Counted from the first letter of the stretch, positions 18,216 through 64,000 are shown. The stretch: DNA of 64,000 nt from Caecitellus pseudoparvulus (GCA_965644315.1 CBFFRQ010000018.1:124001-188000), one strand, 5' to 3'. Made by a program: numbers and translations. The notes: generated by a model not told the origin, from the letters alone.

Positions 18216-18512
18216 ACACAGGCACCCTCACAGCGTCACCTGCGAGGACCAGCGATCAACTGACGAACCCCAGTACACGTGCACAGTGAAGAAGCCTCCA
18301 ACCTCCCTGCCGTCGCCCCACAGCCCTCCCCTGGCCCCACACCAGTGACTGCCCGCACCGGCTGGCTTTCGCCGAAGTGGCGAGCACTCTGTGCGCGGCC
18401 GGGCTGACCTGCATGTAGTGGGGTGCAGAGCAGCGAAGCGGCATGTGCCACGTGCAGAATGGGTGGGTGTTTGATTTTTAGTGCTTGCAAGGTGCTGGAA
18501 GGAGAGGGGAGG
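18025..18512. repeat. Direct repeat copy 1 (5' end and upstream region of the giant gene)
   Basis: Aligns with 24692-~25180 at offset 6667 with scattered substitutions. Confidence 0.9.
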
Positions 18513-18664
18513 GTCGCTTTCTTGAATGCATTGCTGTGGGTCCTGGGAGGTCAGCGACACAGAGGGGACTTGACTCTGTTTCGGCTGCCGCTCGGGAGAA
18601 CCCCCACTGAAGGAGGTACGAGAGGGTACATGCGACATGCTCACAACGTGCCATCGCCATTTTT

Positions 18665-20965
18665 TCAAGCCGCGCTGCCCTCTGACCGCTTTCTGTGCCA
18701 CCATGACAGCGACCAAGCTCTCACTACCATTTTCTTCAGTGGACCCTCGCTCACCCGCATGATCGGACTAGAGCCGGGAACCATGAGCACGAAAAATGCA
18801 CTCCCCATGCCCCGGGTCAGCTGTGAGTACACAGGCGGCCACGGCGAAAGGTTTGGCTCTGCAGCCGACTTGCCAGTGTGCACTTCCACAACTGGTGTGT
18901 CTGGCTTGCAAAATATCACGTTAATGAGCCCTGCTCCGTGTGGTGCGACGATCAGTGCCGCCATGCGGAACACAATGGCTTGTTGGGCAAGCGGCATTGA
19001 TCCGTACAGCAGTACTTCGGCATCCGGCACCACCTCGTAAATCCACTGAATCACTTCCATCTCATTCTGCACAAGGCGCTTCGCATCTCGGTGAACTACA
19101 AGCACCAGAGGCCGTGAGCGACTTTCCACAACTTGATCGAGATCCCGAACAGCCTCTGTCCGACTCGCATCAGCACCCACTGGGCGACCTTGCACCCACC
19201 CTGCAGGTAAGAGGTCCTCAGGCTGCATCACCCGCAGCTGCTCAGGGATACGCAAGTAGCTCCGATTGTACTCTGTCATGTCTACATCGGGTATGCTCGA
19301 CACAAGTCGCACGCTTGGCATTGCTCCGCGAGGTGGCAGGAAGCGCCTGCCTGGTTCAAATGAAACGGGCTGTGCACCCCGTCGACGCTGATGCATGCAA
19401 TCCACAATCCTTTCCACCGCTACGGCTGATGTCATGTTTGCATCATGCACTAGCTGCATAGTGGCCGTGGCCAACATGAACTCCCCCATTGTGGCCAGCT
19501 CACGCAGCGCTGGGGGCGATGTCGTGCACCCAGAACCCGACGGCACCAACGCCCACTCGGCCGTAAACGGCGCATTCATGACACGCAAACGGCTCGAAGG
19601 CAGGCCCAGCAACCCCATGGCTTCCTTCAAAGACTTTGACACGCTACTGCCTGTTGTGATGATGATGGTGGGGTCACGCAAAAGCAGCGTGCGCGCGATC
19701 CAAATGCGAGGCAACAACTCGGACATGAAGTGATAGTGGTTGGAGTGCCACAGCATGTTGACATGCAGTACCGTCGCATGGATGTGCATGAGATTCTCGC
19801 GCTTGAGCCCTTCCGCCGTCAGCGGCTGCCCCTCGGGCTTTGCCTGCTCCGGCGGCTGAAGTCCAACGATACCAGGACCCTCTTTCTGGAAGTAGGTCCA
19901 TTCCCTACAGCCCCCGCCACCGAGCGTTGCCGTTTTGCTGAAGGTCAAGCCTTCCGGCCATAGCACAGCCTTGCGGAGGACAACGATGCTGGCGTGAGAC
20001 CGGCGTGTGAGTGTCTCGGTGAGTACCTGTCGACGAGGCAGAGACTTCGACTTGAGATACTGTGCCCAGTACGCTCGAGTCATCGCCCAGGTATCCCAAG
20101 GATCAACAGGAGCCCACCAGGGGTCATGTGGGAAATTTATTGCCTGGGCAGGCTCAGCCTGGCCAGAAGGCAGCGTCGTTGACGGGTGCTGTAGCAAAAC
20201 CACGCACAACCCTCGTGCCATCTGGCGGTAAAGCTCGTGTGGCTCACCTGAGAAGAATGCTCCCTGAAAGATGCGCAGGGAACCACCAGCCGGCACGATA
20301 GGAAAGCTTGTCGAGTGCTCTTCTGCTGTCCCTTGACAATACGAAGTCCAGTCAAGCCTGAAACCAGTCGCGCCAGCTTGGCTTGGAACCGAAAACAAAT
20401 CCGCAAGACCTGGTGGGTGCACCACAGACCATGCTCCAATGGCGAAGCGCTTTGGCTGCAAGCCAAGCAATGAAGTTGAAATGGTATCCCAAGACTTTTT
20501 ACTGCCTCTCTGTGAACGCTCCACGGCGCCAGACAGCCATTCTTGTTGCGTGTGCCGGACTTGCTCGGCTCGACTGGCTCGCTCAGCCGCCTCATTGCAA
20601 CAGCGCCCCCTGCCGCGCACAGCACCAGCTAAAGCACTGCGGTATGTGGACCTTGAGTCACGCAAATGCAGCCTCAATCTGGACATGCACTGATCCGACC
20701 TCTGAATCGCTGTTGTCCAGAAGCTATACCTCCCCAACGAGTCCCGCAGGCCGCGCACTCCCCCACTGACAAACACGGACACGGCAAGCCACATGAAGAG
20801 CACCAGGATGCTGCACATGATGCACCACCTGATTATCTCTGATGGGAAGCTTCCTGTGGCTTCCTGACGTCCAGAGCCTGGCTTGAGCTCGGTTGCCAGC
20901 CCGTCCTCATTCCGGAGCCCTGGCCCACCATGGATGGTGCCTGGAGGAGCACGCCTCGGGCGCAT
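18665..20965 (-). CDS. GT61/DUF563-like glycosyltransferase, type II membrane protein, copy 1
   Basis: N-terminal TM helix (CIMCSILVLFMWLAVSVFV), NHYHFMSELLPRI motif and the C-terminal GT61-type IVAPHGAGLINVIFCKPDTPVVEV motif. Confidence 0.85.
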   Translation of the reverse strand: MRPRRAPPGTIHGGPGLRNEDGLATELKPGSGRQEATGSFPSEIIRWCIMCSILVLFMWLAVSVFVSGGVRGLRDSLGRYSFWTTAIQRSDQCMSRLRLHLRDSRSTYRSALAGAVRGRGRCCNEAAERASRAEQVRHTQQEWLSGAVERSQRGSKKSWDTISTSLLGLQPKRFAIGAWSVVHPPGLADLFSVPSQAGATGFRLDWTSYCQGTAEEHSTSFPIVPAGGSLRIFQGAFFSGEPHELYRQMARGLCVVLLQHPSTTLPSGQAEPAQAINFPHDPWWAPVDPWDTWAMTRAYWAQYLKSKSLPRRQVLTETLTRRSHASIVVLRKAVLWPEGLTFSKTATLGGGGCREWTYFQKEGPGIVGLQPPEQAKPEGQPLTAEGLKRENLMHIHATVLHVNMLWHSNHYHFMSELLPRIWIARTLLLRDPTIIITTGSSVSKSLKEAMGLLGLPSSRLRVMNAPFTAEWALVPSGSGCTTSPPALRELATMGEFMLATATMQLVHDANMTSAVAVERIVDCMHQRRRGAQPVSFEPGRRFLPPRGAMPSVRLVSSIPDVDMTEYNRSYLRIPEQLRVMQPEDLLPAGWVQGRPVGADASRTEAVRDLDQVVESRSRPLVLVVHRDAKRLVQNEMEVIQWIYEVVPDAEVLLYGSMPLAQQAIVFRMAALIVAPHGAGLINVIFCKPDTPVVEVHTGKSAAEPNLSPWPPVYSQLTRGMGSAFFVLMVPGSSPIMRVSEGPLKKMVVRAWSLSWWHRKRSEGSAA

Positions 20966-21786
20966 CGGGACGGCACGAAGTTGATCTTGAACTGATGCAG
21001 AACAAGTGACTCAGACATTGCATGCGTTCGTCATGCAGCTCATACACCGGCCTGGAAATTGATGATATGTCCCGTACGGGAAACGCCGAGGGAGACCGAT
21101 ACAGGCAAACTGCAAAAGGTGAGCCATGCTCCATCAGGATCCTGGCCCCCAAGCATACGAGCTTCAAGACTCAGCTTCACGTGCAAATGCAACACGGGAT
21201 GGGGCAAAAGGAAGCACAAGCGCGAGCATTGTTGTCGCCGCCAGAAGGCGAGGTTTTGCGTGACAGCTGTCAGCTTTCGATAGCATGAGCACTTGACTGC
21301 TCATGGTCCCCTGAACCAACTGCCTCCCCACTTGGAGAGTGTGATGTAGCTTTCATAAACGCATGTTCGTTTTCCTTGTTGGTCTGCAGGGCAACTCTGT
21401 GGTGGCCGGTGCAAGAGAAGCAGCAAAAACGCTGCCCGGGCCGAGGAAAAAGGTCTCAGTGGCGGACCCTGCAATGAAGTGGCCACATATTGCACCATCA
21501 CGAGAGCAGTCAGCATAAGTGATACAACGCTTCATCGACTGCATCTGGCCGTCGGGTTTCTCCCAATACTAAAGCAAGTCGGCGCCATTGTGAAAGTTGC
21601 ACATGCTCGTACGTTTCGCGGAAATGGCTGTTGAACTTGCACCGCTCAGAGCCGCACGCAACGCCCATGAGGAGAGGAGCGACAGAAGAAGTATGAGGGA
21701 GGGCTCAACAGTGCCACAACGCCATGATCACAGTGTAAAGCTCGGGCAGTGGTGGGAGAACCACGTGAAAGACAGAGCGTGACGAA
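20772..21786. repeat. Leader/promoter cassette P1 (N-terminal tail and TM coding sequence plus ~0.8 kb upstream); lies between divergent GT61 and STELLO genes
   Basis: Homologous to 38589-39609, 41332-42352 and 60584-61603. Confidence 0.85.
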
Positions 21787-21947
21787 GCAAGCTTAGGTTT
21801 GGTGGGGCGAGGGGGGGGCCTCATGGCGTGCGCCAGCGGTCTCCACATTGTGCCGTCCATGTGCCCTCAACTTGCGATAAACTGTTCTCAAACACGAAAT
21901 TCAATGGTGCGTGATGCACCATAGCAGCGCTGCTTCATGCTCTTGCA

Positions 21948-24551
21948 ATGCGTGAGCTCTTGAGCCAAGAAGCTGAGCGGCCGGCAGTGGCAGCTTCCAG
22001 CTGCCTGTGCCAAGGTGCCGAGCGTCCGCACGAAAGGGCATCTACACCCCACGAACCACAAGCAATGAAGGGATCAAAAGCTTCGTGTCGCATCTTCCAG
22101 TCGCGGGCATGCACAATGATTGCAGGCTTGCTCGTGTTGAGTGCAGCGGTAGCTGTGCTCCCCTGGCGTGCGTTGGGCTCGGCATTGTCTGGAAGGCCTC
22201 CACTGCTCAAGAGGGGCCACCAGCGCACACCATTCGCTAAACGTAATGCAGATTCGATTGAAGCTGCTGCTATTGCAGTTTTTGAAGCTAGGGACACGCG
22301 CTTTGCACCTGGCTCCGGAAGCGCAACGTCTGGCCGCAGGTTCACTGGTGCACCTGTTCGAGGCCTGCCGAACGGCACGTCCGTAGACACCTTGATCAGC
22401 CGAGCCCTCGGTTGCACCTACAATTACTCGTGTGACTCCCTGGCTGGCCTTCAAGGGTGCAGTGCGGAGCGGCCCTTCGCAGCTGTTGTGACGACCATCG
22501 CCTCCGCCCCTACAGAAGCTGTGACGGAGCTGGCCTCAGCAAGGCCAGACGTGGACATATTCGTCGTGGCAGACCGCAAAGGGCCAAACTCATGGCCCAA
22601 GGCAACTCCGGCCAACATCCACTACCTCACAGTGCCATATCAGGAGCAACACGAGTTCCAGGCTTTCTCACCTCCTTGGAATCACTTCGGCCGCAAGAAC
22701 TACGGCTACCTAGCCGCTCTGGCGTCAGGCGCATGCTTCATTTGGGACTTTGACGACGACAACGTACTGCTTGATGCAAAGAACGGTGTGTTGAAAACTG
22801 CCCACCTTTCCAGCTGGGCTGCAACCACGCTGCAGCTCAGCCGAGCGCCAAGCAGCGGGGCCAGCTCACCCTGGATCAACCACCTGCCATTCATGGGCGC
22901 AACGTCCTTCATCTGGCCCCGCGGGACGCCCCTGGAGCAGGTGCAAGACAGCACGACCTTCTTACCCACCGTCTCTGGCGCACAGGCGTGCAAGCAGGAT
23001 GCAGCTCGCCCGGGCTGCATCCGCCTGGGGCCCACCTGCTCCTGCCTGGGTATTCTCAGCAGCCTGGCACAAGGGAACCCAGACCTTGACGCTGTGCAGC
23101 GGCTGACTGGCCCTGCGCCTGTGGACTTCAAGCGGGAGCTGGGTGTCATGGGCGTTCTGGGCCCCGGCACGACAGTCTCCCACAACGCCCAGGCCACCCT
23201 GCTGAGCCGCGATGTGGTGCTGTTCGCCATGCTGCCGATGACAGTTCACGGTCGCGTGTCTGATATCTGGCGGGCCCTTATTGCCAACCGCATCGCAGAG
23301 GTTGCAGGGCTGGCGGTGGCGGTGACGTCTGGCGCCGTGGTGCACCACCGCAACCCACACAACTACCTCGCCGACCTGGACGCTGAGCAGCCGCTTTATG
23401 CACAAGCGGGCGTGTTGGGCCAGCTGCTGCAAGCGTGGAAGCCTAACTCCAACAGCATCGCAGGTGCCACTGTGGAAGTATATGTGCACCTGTACGAGAG
23501 GGGCGTGCTGGAGTGGCCCGACGTTACCTGGGCCGTGGAGTGGGTGCGGGCAGTGACGGGCCTCGTTGGAGATGCCCCAGTCAAGAAACAGGCAGCGCTG
23601 CCTTCCCCGCCAGCGCCTGTCCCGCGCCTGGCTGGGGTGACAGCCGTCGTGCACATCAACTTCGACCACACAGAGGTAATCGCGCCCTGGTTGGCGATAT
23701 GGGGGCGCGTATACGACAGCGTGGTGTTCTACGTTCCTGGCCGCGAGAAGTGTGAGGCGTCTGGGCTGCCACGCGGCATAGATGTCAGGATGGTGTGCCA
23801 TGTGCCCTCCGACACCCGCCCACGGGGTGGAGCTCCGGGCCTTAGGGGCGTTGCTGGCCGCAATTCCCAGCCCTGGAAGGAGCTCTTCAGCGGATACTTT
23901 GCGTATGAGTCCCTTCTGCATGCCCTGCTCAATACTCCAGTGCCTGACAAGGGCTACATGTTCATGCACGACGACGCAATCGTGAACGTGCCGCTCATGG
24001 CCCAGAAGCTGCGAACACTGAAACCAGGAGTTGGCCTGCCGTGCGACAAGGCCATCACGCGTCTGGCGTACAACGCGGGCGACAAGACAGTGTCTAGGAT
24101 GCCGAAACATAGCGAATGGATGTGGTCCACACATGACATTGGCATTCGGGCGCTGCAGGCAGCTGCACAGGAGAACCCTGCCATCCACAGCGCCCTGGCT
24201 TTTTGCCAGGAGAAAATTGGCGGCATCCCTGCAGATTCCTGTGACTCCTACTTCTGGCCGGCTGCGAGACGGAAGGAAAGCGTCGCCTTCCTCCAGACCA
24301 TGCTGAAACACAGGGTGTTCCTGGAGATCGCCATGCCGATAGCGGCGCACTGTGGACCGGTGCGCAGCGGCAGCCCTGGCGCGGGAGCCCCGATTGTGAA
24401 GGGGGATCGCACGACACCATACAACTCCTGGAGGGATTTCGATCCCAAGCAACACATATACGTGCATCCAGTGAAGCTTGGTTTGCGGCATGGACCGTTC
24501 GTCCATGCGATGGTGCGAGATGGCAAGGTGAAGCAAGAGAGGCCAAAGTAA
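21948..24551 (+). CDS. STELLO/DUF288-like glycosyltransferase, copy 1
   Basis: N-terminal hydrophobic anchor (IAGLLVLSAAVAVL). Motifs VVTTI, VVADRKGP, WNHFGRKNYGYL-A---GA-FIWDFDDDN, PDLDAVQRLT, PMTVHGRVSDIWR and HHRNPHNYLAD-DAE are typical of STELLO/DUF288. Confidence 0.88.
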   Translation: MRELLSQEAERPAVAASSCLCQGAERPHERASTPHEPQAMKGSKASCRIFQSRACTMIAGLLVLSAAVAVLPWRALGSALSGRPPLLKRGHQRTPFAKRNADSIEAAAIAVFEARDTRFAPGSGSATSGRRFTGAPVRGLPNGTSVDTLISRALGCTYNYSCDSLAGLQGCSAERPFAAVVTTIASAPTEAVTELASARPDVDIFVVADRKGPNSWPKATPANIHYLTVPYQEQHEFQAFSPPWNHFGRKNYGYLAALASGACFIWDFDDDNVLLDAKNGVLKTAHLSSWAATTLQLSRAPSSGASSPWINHLPFMGATSFIWPRGTPLEQVQDSTTFLPTVSGAQACKQDAARPGCIRLGPTCSCLGILSSLAQGNPDLDAVQRLTGPAPVDFKRELGVMGVLGPGTTVSHNAQATLLSRDVVLFAMLPMTVHGRVSDIWRALIANRIAEVAGLAVAVTSGAVVHHRNPHNYLADLDAEQPLYAQAGVLGQLLQAWKPNSNSIAGATVEVYVHLYERGVLEWPDVTWAVEWVRAVTGLVGDAPVKKQAALPSPPAPVPRLAGVTAVVHINFDHTEVIAPWLAIWGRVYDSVVFYVPGREKCEASGLPRGIDVRMVCHVPSDTRPRGGAPGLRGVAGRNSQPWKELFSGYFAYESLLHALLNTPVPDKGYMFMHDDAIVNVPLMAQKLRTLKPGVGLPCDKAITRLAYNAGDKTVSRMPKHSEWMWSTHDIGIRALQAAAQENPAIHSALAFCQEKIGGIPADSCDSYFWPAARRKESVAFLQTMLKHRVFLEIAMPIAAHCGPVRSGSPGAGAPIVKGDRTTPYNSWRDFDPKQHIYVHPVKLGLRHGPFVHAMVRDGKVKQERPK

Positions 24552-24675: not shown

Positions 24676-25180
24676 TCACAGGACCCGCACCTGCCCATTC
24701 CCTACCCCGCCCTCCGACCCCTGAAACAGTCCACCATCACCAGCCTGCAGACGCCGCTCCAGACGAGCCGCATCAATGCTCACAGAGTACCCATGCAGCT
24801 GCCTCAGCAGTGCCTGCGGCGGCTCGCGCTCCTTCTCCGATGCCATGCCTGCGTCGCTGCGACATGCGTTGCCGGCCGCCACACACAGGCACCCTCACAG
24901 CGTCACCTGCGAAGACCAGCGATCAACTGACGAACCCCAGTACACGTGCACAGTGAAGAAGCCTCCTACCTCCCTGCCGTCGCCCCACAGCCCTCCCCTG
25001 GCCCCACACCAGTGACTGCCCGCACCGGCTGGCTCTCGCCGAAGTGGCGAGCACACAGTGCGCAGCCAAGCTGACCTGCACGTAGTAGGGTGCAGAGCAG
25101 CGAAGCGGCATGTGCCACGTGCAGATAAGGTGCACGGTTGCGTTTTTGTGTTTGCGGGGTGCTGGAAGGTGGGAGGGGGT
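24676..25180 (-). pseudogene. Truncated paralogous fragment of the giant gene's 5' end and upstream region (direct repeat copy 2)
   Basis: ORF 24676-24882 (EKEREPPQALLRQLHGYSVSIDAARLERRLQAGDGGLFQGSEG) matches the N-terminus of the 4552-aa protein and stops after 68 aa. Confidence 0.85.
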
Positions 25181-25253: not shown

Positions 25254-27665
25254 CTATGCTGCTCCCCGCAGGCCAAGATCGAGGGCTTTGGAAGTTGGCC
25301 GCGAAAATAAGTGGGGGGCGTGCTTGACTAGCACTCCAAGTGATCCACCTTCCTGCCCCGCCCAAGACGCCTTGCAGCTGACAAACTTGTCCTGTGGCAC
25401 GCTGCTGCAGTCTTTGGCATGCCAGGTGTGCTGCAGGTCATGGTCACACATGCGCAGCACAGCCAGACCATGGGCCTGGACTCTCTTGTAGAAGGCGACA
25501 TCTTCACCCCCCCACCCCTTGAAGGAAGTGTCGAAGCCCCCAACCCTGTCAAAGTCAGACTTGTACATGACCACCATACCATAGCCATACTCTCTCCAAT
25601 TGCCATTATGGGGAGACAGGTCGTAAAATGGGTGGCCGAACCAGTCCTCCACCGCCTGCACCGCTTCAGGGTTGTACTTAGACCACACCACTGGAAAGTA
25701 CGCCGTGCCTCCCCGACGGACCAGTGCCACCGCCCGCAACAGGAACCCCACCTTCACGTGCATGTCTACATCCAGCACCAACAACAGAGCATCACTGGGC
25801 GCAGACGCTGCCGCAGCATTGATGTTGGCGGAGCGGGCCATTGGCTCATGCACTTGCACGATGGCCACCTGCATATCGCCAGTTCTGTACAGCTCTTGGA
25901 TGCTCTCCCGTTGGGCATTGTCGGCGGCGGTGTCGCGTTCATCGCACACTGACCAACCAATGTACACGGAGCCAGTGAAGCCCCCTAAGGTAAAAGCTTC
26001 CTTCATGTTTTCCAGCAGGCGGTGCAGCATGTCATAGCGGCACGAGAAGGGAACGACTGCATGCAGAGTCATGCCGCTTGTGTCACGGCTGTGCACAGCA
26101 AGCAAGGGGGGGTCCGACGCCAAAGACACCTGCACCTCCAGCACTTGGTTGGCTGGTGCAGGCAGGGAGGCAATCACCGTAGTCGTGACACACTCCCGGC
26201 ACCACACGATGGCAACCGAGGCTAGTGCCAAGCTGGGTTGTTCAGCTTTGATTAGGCCTCGTACCTCCGTCAGCAATCTGGAAGCGGGAAGCCCCACCGT
26301 GGTGACAGTCGAAAAGCATTGCTTGATGTTGTTCCCGTCCACATTGGCAAACCACACGTCCTTTGGGCTGGGGCGCTGTGTGTGGCCAGCCTGTGGCAAG
26401 GCATGCAGCCACTCCAGCTTCACGCGGCGCCGCAAGTGCGAGCGCTGGCGCTGCATGGCGACCTGCAAGTCCCACTCTGCCACCAAAAGACCGGCAACAT
26501 CATCTGACAGGCCTGGTACTACTGCAGCGGCGAGCAGGGGACTGCTTTCCTCCCAGGCCGTAGAAGCCAGCAGCTCTTCCTCCAGTGCAGGCGTGGGCAC
26601 TTGCAGCGCACGCTGCACGTGGTGGCGCAGGGATTCAGGGGCCCCTGCAGGAAAGGGAGGTGGTGCTGCGTCACGGGGCTGGGCAGTCTGCACCAAGTTG
26701 CGCAGAATGCCAAGCCAAGGCTGGTTGCTTCCGCGGATGGGCGGCATGGTGCTGGGCAGATGCACTCGCGCCAGCATGCTCATCGGGACAAAGAGGGGGG
26801 TGCGCGCATCAAGCATGCCCTCTTCTGTCTGCCTGCTGACCATACCTGGCACCGAATGCACTTGCAGATCCACCATGAGGTTGTGCACACGTCCTGCATG
26901 TGCCACCATGGAGTCATCGAAGAAGCCAGCCCAAGCAATCTTCGTGCTGCCGCTGTCACGAGCTGCTTGGGATGCCCAAGCAAGCGTATGGAATGCGAGT
27001 TGAAGGGGAGACATGTCATGGTTTGGGAGAGGACCCCATGTGATGCCCACGACCTGCCTCGCGGAGCTGGGCAGTGCCTTGACCGTTGCAGGCGATGCCA
27101 GAATAACAGGCTGCAAGCCTGCGCCGGCAGCTTGAGCGGACCACTCCGCGACTTCTGTGAAGCGCTCAGCTCTGCGCAACACCCAGACAGCCACTAGAAG
27201 TGCAGGGGTTTCCGGTGAGGGGGGAATGACCAAGGAAAACTGGGATGAGCGTTCAAGAAGCTGCCAAAGCGGAACTGCCTGGTTGAAGGCAGCCACACAA
27301 GCATCAGCTCCTTTGCCACTTTGGCCGGCTGTGCTGCCCAGAAGGCCCTGGAACTGAAACATCAAGTAGAAAATCAGAATGACAAGAATGCTGACAGCAA
27401 CGAGCCAAATGAGGCGGACAAGATGTCTGTGCCGCTTGTCGCATTGGCGGCGTTTCAGCATGTCGGCATCCACACAAACTGACAGGATGCCGCCTGTGAG
27501 GAAGGCGCTGGGGCACCCCGAGCACGGGAGGCACCGAGTTTTCGTCATGATCTGCACCTTCCTGTAACAAGTTCGTTTCGGATTTTGGATTAGTTCTGCT
27601 GGCGGGTTCGTTTTCCGGTTGTGAACATGTTGCGCTTGAGGAATTTGTGAGTGCAGGACAACCAT
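25254..27665 (-). CDS. Chondroitin synthase / chondroitin GalNAc-transferase (CHGN, GT7-like) glycosyltransferase; probable start 27461
   Basis: TM anchor (LIWLVAVSILVILIFYLMF). C-terminal DVD motif, YFPVVWSKYNP, WREYGYGMVVMYKSDFDRVGGFDTSFKGWGGEDV and H-WH, characteristic of CHGN/GT7. Confidence 0.85.
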   Translation of the reverse strand: MVVLHSQIPQAQHVHNRKTNPPAELIQNPKRTCYRKVQIMTKTRCLPCSGCPSAFLTGGILSVCVDADMLKRRQCDKRHRHLVRLIWLVAVSILVILIFYLMFQFQGLLGSTAGQSGKGADACVAAFNQAVPLWQLLERSSQFSLVIPPSPETPALLVAVWVLRRAERFTEVAEWSAQAAGAGLQPVILASPATVKALPSSARQVVGITWGPLPNHDMSPLQLAFHTLAWASQAARDSGSTKIAWAGFFDDSMVAHAGRVHNLMVDLQVHSVPGMVSRQTEEGMLDARTPLFVPMSMLARVHLPSTMPPIRGSNQPWLGILRNLVQTAQPRDAAPPPFPAGAPESLRHHVQRALQVPTPALEEELLASTAWEESSPLLAAAVVPGLSDDVAGLLVAEWDLQVAMQRQRSHLRRRVKLEWLHALPQAGHTQRPSPKDVWFANVDGNNIKQCFSTVTTVGLPASRLLTEVRGLIKAEQPSLALASVAIVWCRECVTTTVIASLPAPANQVLEVQVSLASDPPLLAVHSRDTSGMTLHAVVPFSCRYDMLHRLLENMKEAFTLGGFTGSVYIGWSVCDERDTAADNAQRESIQELYRTGDMQVAIVQVHEPMARSANINAAAASAPSDALLLVLDVDMHVKVGFLLRAVALVRRGGTAYFPVVWSKYNPEAVQAVEDWFGHPFYDLSPHNGNWREYGYGMVVMYKSDFDRVGGFDTSFKGWGGEDVAFYKRVQAHGLAVLRMCDHDLQHTWHAKDCSSVPQDKFVSCKASWAGQEGGSLGVLVKHAPHLFSRPTSKALDLGLRGAA

Positions 27666-27896
27666 CGCTCGATCTGGGCCCTGAAAACCCCTCTACGCAC
27701 AGCTCACACAACAAACAGAATCATACTACTCCTTTTCTTTCCAACCAGAAGTCCACACTTGTGCAGCATCGCCACCATCTCTTTCAGCCGTCGCAGCAGG
27801 TTGAGGAGTCAACGTGGACTAATGTGCCAATCCCGAGTCAATCAATTGGAGCGACACCAGAGACTGACCTAATCCCATAGTTTAGAGACAGAGTGC

Positions 27897-39609: not shown

Positions 39610-39611
39610 TC

Positions 39612-55872: not shown

Positions 55873-56178
55873 AACGCAACCAACACCACCGCGGCGGCAA
55901 GAAGCACACCTGCGCTAGTGGTTGATGTGCATTCGATCCCTAGCGTTTGTGAAAAGTCCCCCTGTAAGCCTGGAACGCGAGGGATACAAGGAAGCTTGCT
56001 GCGTTTTCCCTTGAGAGGGGGGTGCAGGGGGGTGCAAGGGGGGAGGGGGGGTGCCTCACGCTGCTCTGTAAGCCAGCAAGGCGCAAAGGCACATTCCAGT
56101 CCCCCCCCCCCTCTGTTAGTCACTTGCTCTTCTCGGCCACCTTCAGCTCTCAAGCACCCGTCTCCCCACCCAGACACC

Positions 56179-58252
56179 ATGGCTCAGCAACGCAGCGAAG
56201 TCAGCACGAGCTCAGTGCCTCAAGCCACCGCCGCCGAGCATGACTCTGCAAAGCGAGCGTTCCAGGGCGTGCATGCGCATCTTCAAAGGATTGCCTTTGA
56301 AAAGGGCAAGCCCTTGCCCATCCCGGAGCGCAAGGTTTGGTTGGCGGGCGCCAGCAACGCAAATGGTGTGCTGCGCTGTGAAACGCTTCCCCACCACGCG
56401 CGCACAAAAGCACCAGTGCTTACCGCCCAGTCCTTGCCCGCGCCGCAGAAGAGTTCCTTCGCGCAGAAGTGCTGGGCCAGCTTGCTAAGCCGCCGCATGA
56501 ATTGGACATGCCCGGTGGTGGTGGTGCGTGACATACCAACGCGAGACTAGGATGGCGTTCCCACCAGCCTTTGCCCGTGTCGAGGCGTGCGGCTTCAACG
56601 CAACACCGCCTGAGTTTACACGCGATCTGTGCCCCCTTTCCGCAGCAGACCACTCCAGTGGAGAGGCCAGGAGCTTCCTTGCCGCGGCCGTCCTGCCCCG
56701 CGTTCCCAACGCGGCAGCCCTCGAGGCTCCAAGCCTGACCGACAGGGTGATAGCGGCACAGGCGAGCTTGGCGTTGGATCGGGCGCTGATCTACCAACTG
56801 TACGTGTTGTACCTGTACAGTGTGAAGGAGAGGGCCCAGATGCAAGCTCAGATCAGGGAGCTGCAGGGCGCACTTGACAAGAACGGCAAGTCCAGTCGGA
56901 ATTCTCCGAGTGTCCAGTACAGCCGTCTGTCCATGTCCAATCACATGGACGCCATCGGCAGGCAGAGGCTCCCTGGACAGGGTTCGTGGACGTTTGCACA
57001 ATTAAAGGCAGGGTCGGGGTGGGGGGTGCCGCCGACTACTCTCACACTCATGTGCACCAACGCAGCCCTCCGGGTACCGGAAGGGCCACTTGGCTCCCCT
57101 GACGATGTCTACGAAACGCTGATAGCGGACGCCGACCTTGAAACGCCGGAGCTAGACTTCCCTCTGGCCTTCATGCACGGCATGCCCAACGCACTGGAAC
57201 AGGCGCTGTCAATCCAGCTGGCAGATGGCGCTGATCCCTGGGACGACGCCAAAGACCTGATGCGACAGGCAGACCCCGGGCAGGTGCGCGAGGCGTGCAA
57301 GAAGCTGCGCGATGCAGTGTCGCGGCTCTTCCAACCCAGCGCACTGTCCAAGGACGAAGCCTTTATGGAGGCGGTGTCTGTGCTCTGCCCCGCCAGGGAG
57401 GCGGAGGTCCTGGTCTGCACGCGACACAGAAAGCAGCCGGCCCACGACGCATTCCTTGACATCAGCTCGCGCTTGGACGGCACGGGGCAAGCTGCCCAGG
57501 ATGCTCTGCGCTACCTGACTTGGGCGGATCGAGGGCGCAACGTGCTCTCGATGGAGGAAGTGCGCCGCAGGCAAACTGCGCGCTTTGCTGCGGTGCGCGA
57601 CTTTGCCACACCGGACGCCCCGTTTGACTGCGCCACGCTCGTGGCAGTCTCCTTGGAGCAGGAGTTGCGCAGGGGGCTCGCCAAGGACGCGGGTGTGTCC
57701 GTGAGGCGCCAGGACGTCGTCACAGCGGCGGCACTGGGGGCGCTGTATGAAGCTGCGGTGCATCTGGTGGACACGGTGCGCAACCAAGCGTACAGCTTTG
57801 TACGCAGCACACCGCCGTTCCCTCACACGTGCGAGTGGCACAAGCTCTCCGCCGCCCAGCTGTACACTATCGGCGCCGTGCTCGGGCCATTGTGGACCTT
57901 CTTGCGCGGGGAGGAGGCCAGCGCCTCCACATGGGGCTTCGTCACCCGGGCCTTCCGCGCTACACTTGTGAGGGATGCCCGTGAGCGTTCGAAGCTGGCC
58001 CAAGCATGTGCCAAGGAAGCGCTTGCGCAGCACCCCGTGGTCAGCACTGACGGCAGTGCCGAGCTGGGCCCCTGCCCGGGCCAGGGATCGGATTCAGGCT
58101 CGGGTTCAGGTTCCGAGTCTGAGCATGAGCCTGGTGCCGAAGCTTCCGGTGTGCTCGGAGACGGCGGGGCGGTGCTGGGATGCGGAAGGTCCCGCGGCAC
58201 AAAGCGCCCGCGCGGCGACGCAACGCCCCCGAGAAACATGTCGTTGGAATGA
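56179..58252 (+). CDS. Transposon ORF2, copy 2 (56179-56550 plus 56528-58252)
   Basis: Same translation as 47458-49531. Confidence 0.65.
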
Positions 58253-60583
58253 TGATAAGTACCCTCGGTACAGGGCATCCATATCGTGTGCGTATGCCTG
58301 CTCTGAGGCTGGTGACACCGCAACACCACCCATATCCCCACCGCACGCCCGTCAGCGCAATGCAAGCTCTTCCGGCGTGCCAGCGTTCGCTTGCGTGCAA
58401 CACCCCCAGCTTGGCGCTGAGGAACAGCTGCACCCCTGTGGCCCATGCAACCACCACACCACTGGAAGCGCACCCCGCCTGGCCCTTTGCCCGTGTGACA
58501 AGGAAGCAGCGGACCAGCATCAGAAGAACCCACCCCCCCCCCCCCCTCCCCCCGTCCGCATAGGGACACTTTCTAATCCCAGCGCAAATCTGAACGGTGC
58601 AAGTCAAGTCCCCATGGTAGCGTACGTTTGCACATGGCCTTAGCCTCGGCCTGCCTGTCGCTGCACGAGTACACAGAAGTGAGCGGCGCACAGCTTGCGT
58701 GCCGGGCGTTTCGCCTGCAACGGCATGGGACATGTCACCTCCTCCGCTCCCGCCTGTCGCCCTCTCCTGCGCAGTGAGCCGGATAGTGTCGTGAAGAGCT
58801 GTACACCTCATGGCCTGCAGACGCCATCGCAGGCTGCAGGTTCGTGCAGGGGCCTAGCACGCGGGTTCAGCATTGGCGTTGCAAAGCCGAGTCACACACA
58901 GACCCCTCTGCGTGCAGGCGCCCCCCCACCCGAGCTCCCCCTGCCAGAGCATGCCCTTTCGAGAAACTTGACCTTGTTGCATCGCGGACTGTGCTCCATG
59001 GATGGCTTCAGCGGTGCGTTGGGACAGGGGTAGCACCCGCCTATGCGCGGCGTTTGCGCGAAACGCCGTGTCATGTTCCAAGGCACCCCCGCACACTCGT
59101 GCCAGCCCCAGCGCCGCAGAAAAGACACCATTGATATGATGTTTGTCGGTACCTATTGAAAGCGCGGCAGTTTCTTGTGAGGGTGGGTGGGACTGCATGC
59201 GCCGGGCGCTGGTGCTGCCTGCCTCCAACGCCACCCCTCTGCGCAGGCGAACTCCCTCACCCGCGACGCACACACACCACCCCTCTGGCCATTCGCAGGG
59301 CCCACTTGGATGATCCAAGTATCTCCCTGAATGCCGCATACTGTACTGGGATGGCCTGAGCGGTGCGTGGCCGTCATGCGCTCGTCCCCATGCCTGGCGT
59401 TGCAGCCGGTGCCTGGCACTCCCACACCATCACCCGAGCCACTGCCGCCCCTTCACAGGAATGGAAGACCCGGCAACCTGATCATGAGGGGCAAGTCCCA
59501 CCACGGTGCCAGCCAAAATGGGGTGAGTGCGAGGGGCTGCTGCGCTGGTGCCTTGTGCAGGGAGCGGCTACGTCGTGACTGCTGGTGTCAAGGTACAGAG
59601 CCACGCGAGCCTCCTCCCCCCACCTGCGCAGGCCTTCCGGTACGCGATGCTGCAGAATAACTGGTGTACCACCCTGAATGACTTGGAGAGGCTCCCCACA
59701 GTGCTTGGCGGACTGAGAGGTGCGCGGCGGCAGAGGCGGGCGGCGGCAAAGGCGCGTGGCCTGAGGCGTGAGTGCTCCGAGGCGGGTGCCGTGGACGCAG
59801 GGCATGCATTGCAGTGCGCGACACCGCCTGGTGACAGTTTGATGGCCAGCGCGAGCTGCAAGGTGCCGTAGACCCCCCCCCCTGCCTGCAATGCACAGCC
59901 TGCTACCAGTTCGCCTGGGTACCCCCAAAGTGGGTGTTTGCACCACCCCCCCCCCCAAAGTGGGTGTCTGCCCCACCCCCACAAAAAGGAGTTTGCCCCA
60001 CCCCCCTATACCCCTTCGAGGGCACCCCCCCCCAGGCATGTCGCCCCCCCCCCGAAAATCTCACGACGGTGCTGAGCAGCCAACACACCATCTACGCATA
60101 CACGGCCGTCCTGCCCACAGACAGCAGCCTCACGAATCAGGTACAGGGACTGGATTTCTGCGTGAACGTACCATTCTGGATAGTGAGGGTTGAATCGCCC
60201 ACGCGCGGCTGTCACTAATGCAGCTACATCGCCCTGTACCATCTTGGACTTGCCTCAACAAGTGCAACGCTGAGCCAGAAGGATTCAACCCCGTGATCAT
60301 GAGGAGCGGGAGCAAACTGACGAGTACATGGAAAATTAGAAGTCCTGAGCAATACATGCGTGCAGTGAGTGGGCTCCAGTGGCAACAAGGTCTGCTGGGG
60401 AAGCCCAAGTCTGACAGTCAGCTGTCGGAAAATGAGGAACGTCAACAGCAGGTAAAGTTTGGATCGCGCACAACGTGCGTCACCCCGCGTGATCTTACTC
60501 GAAGTGGGGATTCATTTGTTTTGACTTCAACGAGCTATACATGTCAGGGGCCCCCCTCCAAGCTGCCCACGACCGTGAGGCTG

Positions 60584-61603
60584 AACACGGACACAGCAAG
60601 CCACATGAAGAGCACCAGGATGCTGTACATGATGCACCACCTGATTATCTCTGATGGGAAGCTTCCTGTGGCTTCCTGACGTCCAGAGCCTGGCTTGAGC
60701 TCGGTTGCCAGCCCGTCCTCATTCCGGAGCCCTGGCCCACCATGGATGCAGCCTGGAGGAGCACGCCTCGGGCGCATCGGGACGGCACGAAGTTGGCCTT
60801 GATCTGGTGCAGAACAAGTGACTCAGACCTTACAGGCGTCCGTCATGCAGCTGACGAGCTGGCATGGAAATTGATGATATGGCCCGCGAGGGAAACGCCG
60901 AGGGAGACCGATAACGACAAGCCGCCACGAGAAGCTATCCAGGCTCTGTGAGGACCCTGGCCCCCAGACTAACGATCTTCAAGACTCAGCTTCATGTGCA
61001 AAAGCAAAAGTGAGGGGGCAGAAGGGAACACATGCTCGAGCAGTATTGTCGCTGCCAGAAAGTGAGGCTTCGCGTGTCAGTCAACAGCTTTCAAAAGCAT
61101 GAGCACTTGACTGCTCATGATCCCCTGACGCACTTGCCTCCCCACCTGGAGTGTGTGATGTACTTTTCATCAATGCATGTCCGTTTTCCTTTGCAGGTCT
61201 GCAGGGTATACTCTGTTGGTGGTCGGTGCAAGAGAAACAGCGAAAACGCTGCCCGGCCGAGAAAAGAACGTCGCTGCGCCGATTCCTGCAATGAGGTGGT
61301 CACGTACTGCACCATCACATGAGCAGGCAAAATGAGTGATAGAACGCTTCATCGACTGCATCTGGTCGTCAGTCTTCTCGCCACACTACAGCAAGTCGAC
61401 GCCATCGAGAAAGTTGCACGTGCTTGAACATTTCGCGGAAGTGGCCGTTGAATTTGCACCGCTCAGAGCCGCACGCAACGCCCATGAGGAGAGGAGCGAC
61501 AGAAGAAGTCTGAGGGAGGACTCAACAGTGCCACTCCGCAATGATCACAGTATGAGGCTCGGGCAGTGGTGGGAGAACCACGTGAAAGACAGAGCGTGAC
61601 GAA
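60584..61603. repeat. Leader/promoter cassette P4 (mosaic of P1-type and P2/P3-type sequence)
   Basis: Homologous to P1-P3; followed by STELLO copy 2 exactly as P1 is followed by copy 1. Confidence 0.85.
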
Positions 61604-61764
61604 GCAACTTTGGGTTTGGAGGGGCGAGGGGGGGGCCTCATGTCGTGCGCCAGCGGTCTCCACATTGTGCTGTCCATGTGTCCTCAACTTGCGGTAGGCC
61701 ATTCTCAAACACGAAAATCAATGGTGCATGGTGCACCATTGCAGCATTGCTTCATGCTCTTGCA

Positions 61765-64000
61765 ATGCGTGAGCTCTTGAGCCAAGAAGCTGAGCGGCCG
61801 GCAGTGGCAGCTTCCAGCTGCCTTTGCCAAGGTGCCAAGCGTCCGCACGAAAGGGCATCTACACCCCACGAACCACAAGCAATGAAGGGATCAAAAGCTT
61901 CGTGTCGCATCTTCCAGTCGCGGGCATGCACAATGATTGCAGGCTTGCTCGTGTTGAGTGCAGCGGTAGCTGTGCTCCCCTGGCGTGCGTTGGGCTCGGC
62001 ATTGTCTGGAAGGCCTCCACTGCTCAAGAGGGGCCACCAGCGCACACCATTCGCTAAACGTAATGCAGATTCGATTGAAGCTGCTGCTATTGCAGTTTTT
62101 GAAGCTAGGGACACGCGCTTTGCACCTGGCTCCGGAAGCGCAACGTCTGGCCGCAGGTTCACTGGTGCACCTGTTCGAGGCCTGCCGAACGGCACGTCCG
62201 TAGACACCTTGATCAGCCGAGCCCTCGGTTGCACCTACAATTACTCGTGTGACTCCCTGGCTGGCCTTCAAGGGTGCAGTGCGGAGCGGCCCTTCGCAGC
62301 TGTTGTGACGACCATCGCCTCCGCCCCTACAGAAGCTGTGACGGAGCTGGCCTCAGCAAGGCCAGACGTGGACATATTCGTCGTGGCAGACCGCAAAGGG
62401 CCAAACTCATGGCCCAAGGCAACTCCGGCCAACATCCACTACCTCACAGTGCCATATCAGGAGCAACACGAGTTCCAGGCTTTCTCACCTCCTTGGAATC
62501 ACTTCGGCCGCAAGAACTACGGCTACCTAGCCGCTCTGGCGTCAGGCGCATGCTTCATTTGGGACTTTGATGACGACAACGTACTGCTTGATGCAAAGAA
62601 CGGTGTGTTGAACACTGCCCACCTTTCCAGCTGGGCTGCAACCACGCTGCAGCTCAGCCGAGCGCCACGCACCGACACCAGCTCACCCTGGATCAACCAC
62701 CTGCCATTCATGGGCGCAACGTCCTTCATCTGGCCCCGCGGGACGCCCCTGGAGCAGGTGCAAGACAGCACGACCTTCTTACCCACCGTCTCTGGCGCAC
62801 AGGCGTGCAAGCAGGATGCAGCTCGCCCGGGCTGCATCCGCCTGGGGCCCACCTGCTCCTGCCTGGGTATTCTCAGCAGCCTGGCACAAGGGAACCCAGA
62901 CCTTGACGCTGTGCAGCGGCTGACTGGCCCTGCGCCTGTGGACTTCAAGCGGGAGCTGGGTGTCATGGGCGTTCTGGGCCCCGGCACGACAGTCTCCCAC
63001 AACGCCCAGGCCACCCTGCTGAGCCGCGATGTGGTGCTGTTCGCCATGCTGCCGATGACAGTTCACGGTCGCGTGTCTGATATCTGGCGGGCCCTTATTG
63101 CCAACCGCATCGCAGAGGTTGCAGGGCTGGCGGTGGCGGTGACGTCTGGCGCCGTGGTGCACCACCGCAACCCACACAACTACCTCGCCGACCTGGACGC
63201 TGAGCAGCCGCTTTATGCACAAGCGGGCGTGTTGGGCCAGCTGCTGCAAGCGTGGAAGCCTAACTCCAACAGCATCGCAGGTGCCACTGTGGAAGTATAT
63301 GTGCACCTGTACGAGAGGGGCGTGCTGGAGTGGCCCGACGTTACCTGGGCCGTGGAGTGGGTGCGGGCAGTGACGGGCCTCGTTGGAGATGCCCCAGTCA
63401 AGAAACAGGCAGCGCTGCCTTCCCCGCCAGCGCCTGTCCCGCGCCTGGCTGGGGTGACAGCCGTCGTGCACATCAACTTCGACCACACAGAGGTAATCGC
63501 GCCCTGGTTGGCGATATGGGGGCGCGTATACGACAGCGTGGTGTTCTACGTTCCTGGCCGCGAGAAGTGTGAGGCGTCTGGGCTGCCACGCGGCATAGAT
63601 GTCAGGATGGTGTGCCATGTGCCCTCCGACACCCGCCCACGGGGTGGAGCTCCGGGCCTTAGGGGCGTTGCTGGCCGCAATTCCCAGCCCTGGAAGGAGC
63701 TCTTCAGCGGATACTTTGCGTATGAGTCCCTTCTGCATGCCCTGCTCAATACTCCAGTGCCTGACAAGGGCTACATGTTCATGCACGACGATGCGATCGT
63801 GAATGTGCCGCTCATGGCCCAGAAGCTGCGAACACTGAAACCAGGAGTTGGCCTGCCGTGCGACAAGGCCATCACGCGTCTGGCGTACAACGCGGGCGAC
63901 AAGACAGTGTCTAGGATGCCGAAACATAGCGAATGGATGTGGTCCACACATGACATTGGCATTCGGGCGCTGCAGGCAGCTGCACAGGAGAACCCTGCCA
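61765..64000 (+). CDS. STELLO/DUF288-like glycosyltransferase, copy 2 (runs off the right edge)
   Basis: ATG at 61765; near-identical to 21948 onward (offset 39817), with no stop seen before the window end. Confidence 0.88.
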   Translation, partial: MRELLSQEAERPAVAASSCLCQGAKRPHERASTPHEPQAMKGSKASCRIFQSRACTMIAGLLVLSAAVAVLPWRALGSALSGRPPLLKRGHQRTPFAKRNADSIEAAAIAVFEARDTRFAPGSGSATSGRRFTGAPVRGLPNGTSVDTLISRALGCTYNYSCDSLAGLQGCSAERPFAAVVTTIASAPTEAVTELASARPDVDIFVVADRKGPNSWPKATPANIHYLTVPYQEQHEFQAFSPPWNHFGRKNYGYLAALASGACFIWDFDDDNVLLDAKNGVLNTAHLSSWAATTLQLSRAPRTDTSSPWINHLPFMGATSFIWPRGTPLEQVQDSTTFLPTVSGAQACKQDAARPGCIRLGPTCSCLGILSSLAQGNPDLDAVQRLTGPAPVDFKRELGVMGVLGPGTTVSHNAQATLLSRDVVLFAMLPMTVHGRVSDIWRALIANRIAEVAGLAVAVTSGAVVHHRNPHNYLADLDAEQPLYAQAGVLGQLLQAWKPNSNSIAGATVEVYVHLYERGVLEWPDVTWAVEWVRAVTGLVGDAPVKKQAALPSPPAPVPRLAGVTAVVHINFDHTEVIAPWLAIWGRVYDSVVFYVPGREKCEASGLPRGIDVRMVCHVPSDTRPRGGAPGLRGVAGRNSQPWKELFSGYFAYESLLHALLNTPVPDKGYMFMHDDAIVNVPLMAQKLRTLKPGVGLPCDKAITRLAYNAGDKTVSRMPKHSEWMWSTHDIGIRALQAAAQENPA

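Follow-up and report, generated by a model that had tools for sequence, protein, structure and literature searches.

The window analysed here is the whole stretch of 64,000 nucleotides, of which the part from 18.0 to 64.0 kb is occupied by a glycosyltransferase (GT) island of ~47 kb whose right end lies ~1 kb beyond the window. Within the 30.6-Mb genome, the island is found at 142-189 kb of a 1.35-Mb contig, C18, measured from the telomere-capped contig end. It carries eight GT genes (two GT61, two STELLO, one CHGN/GT7, one GT64 multi-domain fusion and two GT77-like genes, one of them disrupted), together with a single LRR gene and an 8.25-kb Plavaka-like transposon in two copies. The five families had been proposed in an earlier note made from the sequence alone and were recovered by Pfam search. 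The accompanying description of membrane-anchored, single-ORF genes holds as well: each intact GT is a single ORF with one N-terminal hydrophobic anchor of the Golgi type (type II), that of GT77a being weak and confined to residues 1-22. Orientations across the island run -,+,-,+,-,-,-,+, and two head-to-head pairs, GT61/STELLO and CHGN/LRR, have short common upstream regions. The right flank consists of ordinary genes (S10 peptidase, ADH, DSP and a Na/H exchanger), and the left flank of giant ORFs without a Pfam match and two GT10 genes. A 621-aa ORF directly beyond the window, which carries a type-II anchor, was considered as a ninth GT and left out of the count, because its GT11 match is faint (E=0.016) and searches of PDB and NCBIfam returned no match.

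The left boundary of the island is repeat R (18025-18576), which is the 5' end and promoter of a neighbouring 4540-aa gene. Beside it lies GT61a (18665-20965, minus strand), encoding a type-II GT61-like protein of 766 aa (Pfam PF04577, E=1e-13; TM 40-73), head to head with STELLOa (21948-24551, plus strand), which encodes a type-II STELLO/DUF288-like protein of 867 aa (PF03385, E=8e-13, the match covering the N-terminal part of the profile only; TM 52-80). Their common upstream region is spacer X' copy 1 (20772-21786). STELLOa is followed by the left part of a further R copy, R' (24692-25169), apparently split by an 11.2-kb CHGN-LRR-GT64f segment. The leftmost gene of this segment is a CHGN-like GT7 gene (25254-27665, minus strand), whose type-II product of 803 aa matches Pfam CHGN (E=4.5e-42) and Glyco_transf_7C, has a TM at 79-112, and finds its nearest solved structure in the C-terminal domain of CHSY3 (E=1e-27). 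The ATG of the adjoining LRR_8 gene (27936-29720, plus strand; Pfam LRR_8, E=7e-97; 72-nt tandem repeats) is 271 bp from that of the CHGN gene, and its product is probably secreted or at the cell surface. The third gene, GT64f (31362-35861, minus strand), encodes a fusion protein of 1499 aa with Pfam matches to GT64, GT2, F5/8C and GT2_3.

To the right of the segment, the right-hand 50 bp of R (36343-36392) run on into the unit of GT61b (36482-38782, minus strand), the duplicate of GT61a. Spacer X' copy 2 (38589-39609, located by self-BLAST) is followed by GT77a (39612-40553, minus strand), an intact GT77-like (Nucleotid_trans) gene of 313 aa. Its own match to PF03407, spanning profile positions 3-206 of 208, is borderline at 22.6 bits for a threshold of 22, and paralogues 53-56% identical to it match the same profile at E=2e-14 and 3e-13; PF03407 is also carried by the homologue P0276, and a 100% identical protein occurs in metagenomes. 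The 2743-bp GT77 unit is present a second time, represented by X' copy 3 and the 3' 246 codons of GT77b (41332-43094, minus strand; the codons at 42355-43094). GT77b is interrupted there by the transposon copy T1 (43095-51344, minus strand; transposase at 43673-47047, minus strand), flanked by the 2-bp target duplication AA. The orphaned 5' fragment of GT77b (51342-51815, minus strand), which is 99.4% identical to 40347-40820 and has one in-frame TGA, lies between T1 and T2 (51815-60069, minus strand), a further copy of the transposon that was inserted independently, at a distance of 474 bp from T1, and has the target duplication TG. Z1 and X' copy 4 (60070-61603) precede STELLOb (61765-64000, plus strand, and on to 64368 past the window), the duplicate of STELLOa, which is followed by R''.

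The most elaborate of these proteins is GT64f, in which a TM anchor is followed by GT64, uncatalogued GT-A and discoidin/F5-8C domains and by a GT2 domain at the C-terminus; the AF2 model has a pLDDT of 88.6, and domain folds were compared by Foldseek. In the GT64 domain (Pfam E=8e-47; EXTL2 matched at E=2.6e-23 and EXT at ~1e-20) the DDD motif at 238-240 is conserved in alignment, and in the middle GT-A domain, with DDD at 532-534, D532 and D533 are invariant and D534 nearly so, while no DXD motif is left in the C-terminal GT2 domain. Neither the CHGN nor the GT64f protein was found on record by exact look-up. Relatives of GT64f were missed by a word search, and an exhaustive HMMER search of the libraries gave only distant ones, at 34-36% identity or less, with no sequence above ~40% identity in the libraries searched. 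The best outside relatives are eukaryotic, from Sphaeroforma and Corallochytrium, and the architecture of GT64, uncatalogued GT-A and discoidin domains is also found in unicellular relatives of animals. A first alignment of the middle domain was too diverse for a metagenome scan, and a scan with a trimmed version found two loci, one already known. As a group, the island enzymes look functional, judging from the retention of DXD motifs, a dN/dS of 0.19 between the GT61 duplicates and three deep paralogues of GT64f.

The DNA of the island had been described in the earlier note as less GC-rich than that at 1-18 kb, and this was borne out, also when 258 kb of the same contig served as background. 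GC content is 57.5% for the island without the transposon and 64.7% for the remainder of the 258 kb; by region, values are 55-60% in the island and 65-69.5% at 1-18 kb, all 5-kb windows of the island fall below the 5th percentile of the flanks, and median GC3 is 0.64 against 0.74 (Mann-Whitney p=6e-4). Other patches of 57-63% GC exist within the same subtelomeric 258 kb, so the low GC of the island is real and not unique to it. GT enrichment, for which the note had proposed a comparison with the genome, is likewise evident against the genome-wide positions of family hits: 6 of 39 hits to the five GT families fall inside 45.5 kb, or 0.15% of the genome (Poisson 5e-11), and the probability of four independent families in one window of such size is 1.2e-5 after multiplying by 672 windows.

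A block of low GC and GC3, bracketed at both boundaries by 552-bp direct repeats (18025-18576 and 64509-65060, just beyond the window, 96% identical) and composed of intronless genes in a genome whose UDP-glucose dehydrogenase gene has introns, might suggest acquisition by horizontal transfer, for instance from a giant virus or another eukaryote. Such an origin is nevertheless very unlikely. The bracketing repeats stem from the 5' end of a host gene, the native genes adjoining the island are also single long ORFs, and every family has deep paralogues (39-75% identical) across other contigs. Moreover, the viral contigs searched gave no match, viral hallmark genes were not found among the scanned ORFs, and the closest outside relatives of GT64f are the eukaryotic ones named above. 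The paralogous GT loci on C89, C161, C43 and C54, described on the basis of hit tables and of some loci of 4-5 kb, show that the island has company. GT64 paralogues and a broken STELLO copy are found in the first 90 kb of C89, which also carries a separate EXT-like GT47+GT64 ORF; C161/C210 has a CHGN+STELLO cluster, and C54 a GT64f paralogue along with separate GT77-like genes. Overall, identities of GT paralogues on other contigs range from 39 to 86%.

Self-BLAST of the region exposes a layered architecture. At the core of the island, two [R-GT61-spacer-STELLO] modules stand in tandem, and three copies of the 0.5-kb repeat R bracket them, R' and R'' each being placed after a STELLO gene. The left R copy and R' (18025-18502 against 24692-25169) are 91.8% identical, copies 2-4 of X' match copy 1 at 85% identity, and 41332-43094 is 99.9% identical to 38589-40351. 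Four further steps can be read from these repeats: the 11.2-kb CHGN-LRR-GT64f segment is nested inside the middle R copy, a GT77 unit was inserted in the spacer of the second module, this unit was copied in tandem, and a recently active Plavaka-like transposon entered and broke the second GT77 copy on two separate occasions. The spacers of the older duplicates have diverged by 5-15%, and the genes they accompany are near-identical: GT61a and GT61b differ by 46 nucleotides and 14 of 766 residues (dN/dS as given above), and STELLOa and STELLOb by 12 nucleotides and 6 of 867 residues. The GT61 and STELLO duplicates are under purifying selection. Thus, of the earlier proposal that the product's structure is being remodelled by duplication and gene knockout, the duplications and the transposon knockout of one GT gene stand, but the duplicates have barely diverged, which speaks for copy number and not diversification, and remodelling of structure is overstated for them. 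The near-identity of the duplicated genes gives no direct sign of a differing glycan.

T1 and T2 are 99.83% identical, and each carries a Plavaka-family transposase of 1124 aa, for which 14 Plavaka clusters were returned by Atlas at 0.92-0.94 and the match to Pfam PF18759 is weak (E=0.008). The ends are imperfect terminal inverted repeats (TIRs) of ~16 bp, and the 2-bp target site duplications (TSDs) could be verified with the intact GT77 copy as the empty site. At least six near-identical copies exist genome-wide, and the full-length copies on C18, C161 and C43 are within or at most 8 kb from GT genes. The transposase, TIRs, 2-bp target duplications and multiple near-identical copies are shared with Plavaka and Kyakuja-Dileera-Zisupton-type transposons (PF18759), whereas the 8.25-kb element described here has extra ORFs of unknown function.

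Copies that are 99.8-99.9% identical, in an assembly where some contigs resemble alternative copies of each other (e.g. C161/C210 and C149/C199), raise the concern that the duplications and the tandem transposon pair were created by haplotype stitching or repeat expansion during assembly. This is extremely improbable, as T1 and T2 each have their own clean 2-bp target duplication at different GT77b sites, and two runs of the organism gave contig sets, independent of each other, that both contain the Y->T joint. Per-contig depths of ~125 for X' (3 copies) and ~86 for GT77/Z1 (2 copies) match a 3 : 2 ratio, and the older duplicates have spacers that differ by 5-15%. The Y->T joint is apparently missing from metagenome run X5, and coverage is patchy in organism B, both being contig sets of a kind that cannot show absence.

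Nor is the locus invariant among natural strains, as seen in a metagenome scaffold, L045, that is ~98% identical to the island and lacks a 19,252-bp segment (41332-60583) comprising GT77b and both transposons. This scaffold has no Ns and is colinear with STELLOb-X'-Z1-GT77-X'-GT61b-GT64f, its two X' copies being told apart by 9 mismatches. Variation between natural strains was thus observed, with moderate support, since the comparison involves a single short-read metagenome scaffold.

The earlier note envisaged an operon-like cluster for a GAG-like cell-coat polymer, and neither term finds support. Orientations are mixed, and no genes for sugar-nucleotide synthesis, transporters, glucuronyl-transferases or sulfotransferases are found within the island. 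No GT47, GT43 or GT31 glucuronyl-transferase domain was detected in any island protein, GT47 hits being located on other contigs, and Sulfotransfer_1 and Sulfotransfer_2 have zero hits genome-wide; Sulfotransfer_3 has three hits, none of them near the island. The more general proposition, that selection, acting on co-inheritance or co-regulation, maintains a dedicated biosynthetic cluster whose GTs act sequentially on one, possibly GAG-like, cell-coat polymer, with GT64f as polymerase and the CHGN, GT61 and GT77 enzymes adding backbone or side-chain sugars, is unlikely in our estimation. It draws on the affinity of the GT64 domain to EXTL2/EXT and of the CHGN domain to CHSY3, on the two intact GT-A domains and discoidin module of GT64f, on the common upstream regions of the two head-to-head pairs, and on a genomic source of UDP-glucuronic acid, a UDP-glucose dehydrogenase gene on C17. 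However, the missing pathway and sulfation genes and the mixed orientations already mentioned count against it, as does a gene content built by recent nested insertions and differing between strains.

Some functional linkage is also suggested by gene order at other loci. The old paralogous locus on C161/C210 repeats the convergent STELLO/CHGN pair, with identities no higher than 56% and 40%, and GT64f homologues in other organisms adjoin GT10, DegT aminotransferase, epimerase/dehydratase and TPT transporter genes or else sulfotransferases; one of them is situated inside a true sugar-pathway cluster. This recurrence of GT64f clustering across organisms covers three contexts. The STELLO/CHGN pair was rejected as proof of functional linkage, because the R copy between STELLOa and CHGN suggests that their adjacency in the island is secondary.

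Homology of the GT64 and CHGN domains is to GAG enzymes, and it does not specify the product made. GT64f resembles animal EXT1/EXT2/EXTL (GT47+GT64) in being a multi-GT fusion with a DDD-bearing GT64 domain, but this domain is paired with uncatalogued GT-A, discoidin and dead GT2 domains, not with GT47. Similarly, the CHGN-like protein matches the GT7 domain of CHSY3, as in animal CHSY/CHPF (GT31+GT7), but has no detectable GT31 half, and unlike the animal GAG polymerases, the island has no linked sulfotransferases. From its domain content, GT64f, with two intact GT-A domains and a carbohydrate-binding module, would be the most likely chain-building enzyme of the island, and, more speculatively, it could represent a novel type of repeat-polymer synthase tied to EXT enzyme ancestry. 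In any case, it is an unstudied multi-domain GT, and the GT-A family of its middle domain is barely recognised by Pfam.

We consider it probable that the locus is a dynamic accessory island of ~47 kb in which genes for Golgi type-II GTs are gained, duplicated and lost. The enzymes would add sugars to Golgi-made glycoconjugates that are secreted or displayed at the cell surface, and their clustering would be chiefly a result of local duplication and accretion within a change-tolerant region, not of selection for one co-regulated pathway. GT gene content, and hence presumably the glycan coat, would then differ between strains. Given the nested duplications, transposon insertions and strain differences, the island looks like a fast-changing sugar-coat toolbox, not a single fixed pathway, and because its history can be read stepwise from the repeats, it is a tractable place to ask how a protist sugar coat evolves.

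GT gene clusters are the rule in bacteria, and rare and little studied in eukaryotes. Among protists, kinetoplastids have (sub)telomeric GT families, such as the SCG/SCA side-chain galactosyl- and arabinosyl-transferases of Leishmania major, that set strain-specific LPG structure. The likeness to the island lies in expanded GT paralogues near chromosome ends and in copy-number or content differences thought to underlie surface-glycan polymorphism. Unlike these single-family arrays, the island mixes five unrelated families and a transposon, at 142-189 kb from the telomere.

The island finds its nearest counterpart in the small outlier chromosome (SOC) of the Mamiellales, e.g. chromosome 19 of Ostreococcus tauri, the "viral immunity chromosome" (PMC5082852; Bathycoccus genome, PMC3491373). 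Lower GC, GT enrichment, transposon-related genes, large repeats and rearrangements, and strain differences are common to both, as is the idea of surface-glycan genes held in a plastic compartment. Conversely, the island is 47 kb of a telomere-capped 1.35-Mb contig and one of several, not a separate small chromosome; its GTs belong to eukaryotic Golgi type-II families (GT61, STELLO, GT7/CHGN, GT64 and GT77), whereas those of the SOC are largely prokaryote-like and stand alongside methyltransferases, epimerases and sugar transporters (PMC5082852; PMC3491373). Nothing points to the host being a Mamiellales alga either; among named sequences, the nearest, a 99% match, is filed under Symbiodinium sp. 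KB8, where it probably derives from a contaminant or an associate of the culture. More speculatively, the island and its paralogues could form a distributed, transposon-driven system of surface-glycan variation that would play, in an unrelated protist, the functional part of the viral immunity chromosome. In that event, glycan epitopes would be switched between strains by changes in copy number and by on/off knockout of single Golgi GTs, of which the GT77 copy that a locally hopping Plavaka-like element has hit twice, and that the wild strain lacks, would be an example; the susceptibility of a strain to viruses, grazers or symbiotic partners would follow from this. The Mamiellales outlier chromosome is one well-known protist case tying such a compartment to virus resistance, and here the same ingredients appear in another lineage and another format, as several islands in ordinary chromosomes equipped with eukaryotic Golgi GT families.

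The contig that holds the window (C18) is 1.35 Mb long, in a genome of 30.6 Mb and 215 contigs, and because it begins with CCCTAA telomere repeats, the glycosyltransferase (GT) island, which runs for about 47 kb from about 18.0 kb of the window to about 1 kb past its end, is 142-189 kb away from the end of the chromosome. Pfam found each of the five GT families that the earlier note had named: GT61a and GT61b (18665-20965 and 36482-38782, both on the minus strand; Glyco_transf_61), STELLOa and STELLOb (21948-24551 and 61765->64368, plus strand; STELLO), a CHGN-like gene (25254-27665, minus; CHGN and Glyco_transf_7C, E=4.5e-42), the 1499-aa fusion GT64f (31362-35861, minus; GT64, GT2, F5/8C and GT2_3), and GT77a (39612-40553, minus; a borderline Nucleotid_trans match), alongside a leucine-rich repeat (LRR) gene (27936-29720, plus; LRR_8). 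The weak GT77a assignment is backed by paralogues (53-56% identity) that match the GT77 family at E ~1e-13, and by PF03407 in a metagenomic homologue. Every intact GT is a single membrane-anchored ORF, as first read, with one N-terminal hydrophobic segment (in GT77a, residues 1-22 only), which is the membrane topology of type-II Golgi enzymes. The window contains neither tRNAs nor Rfam RNAs. The CHGN-like and LRR genes are head-to-head, their first ATGs separated by just 271 bp (27665-27936), and one bidirectional promoter may serve both; on the other contigs read, paralogues of CHGN are not accompanied by a homologue of the LRR gene.

Self-comparison and junction alignments give the structure of the island. 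A 0.5-kb repeat, R (18025-18576), formed by the promoter and 5' end of the adjoining 4540-aa gene, recurs behind each STELLO gene, at 24692-25169 (91.8% identical) and at 64509-65060 (96%). The core thus consists of two R-GT61-X'-STELLO modules in tandem with a third R at the end, X' being the spacer of about 1 kb that separates GT61 from STELLO, which lie head-to-head. The middle R breaks off at the equivalent of ~18502 and its final 50 bp resume at 36343-36392; 11.2 kb with the CHGN-like gene, the LRR gene and GT64f thus sit inside it. The second module's spacer holds a 2743-bp unit (X'-GT77-Z1, where Z1 is its third part), present twice in tandem at 99.9% identity, and GT77b is disrupted by two copies of an 8.25-kb transposon, T, in the same orientation, 474 bp apart and 99.83% identical. 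GT61a and GT61b differ by 46 nt and 14 aa (dS 0.053, dN/dS 0.19), and STELLOa and STELLOb by 12 nt and 6 aa; the GT61/STELLO spacers are only 85-93% identical. Judged from these comparisons, the duplicate coding regions are conserved or homogenised and not diversifying, and duplication changes copy number without creating new specificities.

That the duplications are artefacts of assembly is unlikely, because the joint of Y, the GT77 5' fragment, to T (40819->43095) occurs in contig sets from two runs of the organism, though these may be the assembly's own source; because per-contig depth is ~125 for the three-copy X' against 81-87 for the two-copy GT77 and Z1 parts; and because the spacers of the older duplicates differ by 5-15%. 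Public metagenome assemblies also contain a protein with 100% identity to GT77a. One 7.8-kb scaffold (ENA ERZ23499096), ~98% identical to the window, is colinear with STELLOb(5')-X'-Z1-GT77-X'-GT61b-GT64f(5') and is without 41332-60583, a stretch of 19,252 bp that comprises the second GT77 unit and both T copies. This scaffold is free of Ns, and between its two copies of X' there are 9 mismatches in 1021 positions, enough for the assembler to separate them. The 19,252-bp segment is absent from a natural strain, with moderate confidence from a single short-read scaffold, and the locus is to that extent not invariant among strains. With its nested duplications, transposon insertions and natural structural variant, the locus bears out the earlier description of a rearranging island.

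Compared with the intact GT77 copy as empty site, the two T insertions show separate 2-bp target duplications, AA for one and TG for the other. T ends in imperfect inverted repeats of ~16 bp and encodes an 1124-aa protein that clusters with transposases of the Plavaka family and has a weak Pfam match. At least six near-identical copies occur in the genome, the further ones including C161:5599-13849, C43:241519-249760, C12:1-8238 and C40:146220-153362. Those of full length, on the three contigs C18, C161 and C43, lie inside or at most 8 kb from GT genes: on C161 the distance to two CHGN genes is 1.2 kb, and on C43 that to a CHGN-like gene is 8 kb, which suggests that T either prefers GT islands for insertion or is tolerated there.

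The lower GC noticed relative to 1-18 kb is real (55-60% against 65-69.5%). It persists without the transposon (57.5% versus 64.7% in the other 210 kb of C18 that were read), every 5-kb island window falls under the flanks' 5th percentile, and median GC3, with the same contig as background, is 0.64 in island genes versus 0.74 in 49 other long ORFs (p=6e-4). It is not unique, however, since other lower-GC patches occur in the same subtelomeric 258 kb. Genome-wide six-frame searches returned 13 GT61, 5 STELLO, 7 CHGN, 8 GT64 and 6 GT77 matches, and 6 of these 39 fall in the island's 45.5 kb (Poisson 5e-11). Calculated as the chance of four independent families in one such window, multiplied by 672 windows, which discounts tandem copies and post-hoc choice, the enrichment for the island's families stands at 1.2e-5.

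GT64f, numbered from its ATG, comprises a TM anchor (67-99), a GT64 domain (151-395, DDD at 238-240) to which, among solved structures, EXTL2 and the GT64 halves of EXT1/2/EXTL3 are closest, a middle domain (445-700), a discoidin domain, and a C-terminal GT2 that has lost its DXD (LNGAK versus DDDD in homologues). The middle domain (alignment region 33657-34556, minus strand, residues 436-735) looks like an uncatalogued GT-A family, since Pfam hardly detects it (weak GT2 matches in 4 of 39 members and weak GT64 matches in 3). The signatures D-D-(D), C...C and W-G-G are conserved over the 39 aligned homologues; in the motif CFIIDDDF, D532 and D533 are invariant and D534 nearly so. Its AlphaFold model (pLDDT 88.6) has a GT-A fold, with EXTL2/EXT as best Foldseek matches at modest TM-scores of 0.46-0.57, and among the best 150 HMMER matches dozens are the middle domain alone, in shorter proteins without the GT64 part. 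Three paralogues in the genome share the whole architecture (100, 75 and 46% identity), and the best matches among 1.84 billion representatives, Sphaeroforma arctica SARC_11299 and a Corallochytrium protein included, reach just 34-36%. For the CHGN-like protein, the match is to CHSY3 in its GT7 half (E=1e-27); nothing matched the 440 aa at the N-terminus of the CHGN-like protein.

On the left the island is flanked by three large ORFs (4540, 1797 and 1098 aa) with zero Pfam matches. Six uninterrupted ORFs of 2100-6100 aa, the 4540-aa one among them, lie within the first 258 kb of C18 (window 4557-18179, minus strand; C18:22877-31951, 36371-53515, 61881-78422, 82284-88604 and 210486-228788). Two type-II GT10 fucosyltransferase-like genes of 1038 and 1126 aa (C18:104189-107305 and 114806-118186, both plus), 17-37 kb left of the island, make up two of the genome's three GT10 matches; a GT10 gene also directly adjoins a GT64f homologue on a metagenome contig (L040). 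Right behind the last R lies a 621-aa ORF (C18:189190-191055, minus; 1190-3055 of locus L016) that is anchored at its N-terminus and faintly matches GT11 (E=0.016); it may be one further GT at the edge of the island. The right flank consists of ordinary genes (S10 peptidase, ADH, dual-specificity phosphatase, Na/H exchanger). Its serine carboxypeptidase (L016:3791-5161, plus) is 99% identical to a Logan/ENA metagenome protein (P0154) whose 90% cluster includes an NCBI protein filed under Symbiodinium sp. KB8, an assembly that probably contains the present protist as culture associate or contaminant. Elsewhere, a UDP-glucose dehydrogenase (UGDH) match in three pieces (C17:152794-153650, minus) seems to reflect introns, which the genome does use, in contrast to the single-ORF island genes and their giant neighbours.

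The earlier proposal that these GTs form one operon-like cluster for a glycosaminoglycan-like polymer is not supported. Findings elsewhere do favour a pathway: a metagenomic GT64-LamG-discoidin-GT2 homologue of GT64f, from an organism of ~51% GC, has as its neighbours GT10, a DegT aminotransferase, three epimerase/dehydratase ORFs and two TPT-type transporters (L040, JGI Ga0315906_10008499; L041, ENA ERZ27247979; and a 31.6-kb JGI contig encoding P0151), and this compact cluster is a genuine sugar-pathway cluster. Another GT64f homologue adjoins two sulfotransferases, and the convergent STELLO/CHGN pair is found again on C161/C210 (56% and 40% identity). The island itself, however, has mixed gene orientations and no precursor, transporter, glucuronyl-transferase or sulfotransferase genes; in the whole genome Sulfotransfer_1 and _2 have no detectable match, and the three Sulfotransfer_3 matches are all away from it. 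Its genes were brought together by recent insertions, its content is polymorphic, and the STELLOa/CHGN adjacency looks secondary because a copy of R lies between the two. An unsulfated, heparosan-like product may be made, since UGDH and an EXT-like GT47+GT64 ORF are present elsewhere in the genome, but nothing at the island points specifically that way. A toolbox of GTs is the more economical reading, given further GT loci. The first 90 kb of C89 carry, at 25-83 kb, several GT paralogues: one of GT64f (75% identical), a transposon fragment, a 1068-aa GT64 ORF, a 1592-aa EXT-like ORF (GT47 and weak GT64), and a STELLO paralogue, 81-86% identical, whose break into two frames makes it probably a pseudogene. 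C161/C210 hold a CHGN and STELLO cluster, and on C54 a paralogue of GT64f lies 75-190 kb from GT77-like genes.

A foreign origin of the island is unlikely, because the bracketing repeats come from a host gene, all island GT families have deep paralogues in the genome, the nearest outside relatives are eukaryotic, and a search of viral contigs gave zero matches. The closest known analogue is the outlier chromosome of Mamiellales (PMC5082852), from which the island differs in format, in GT families and in the evidence for function.
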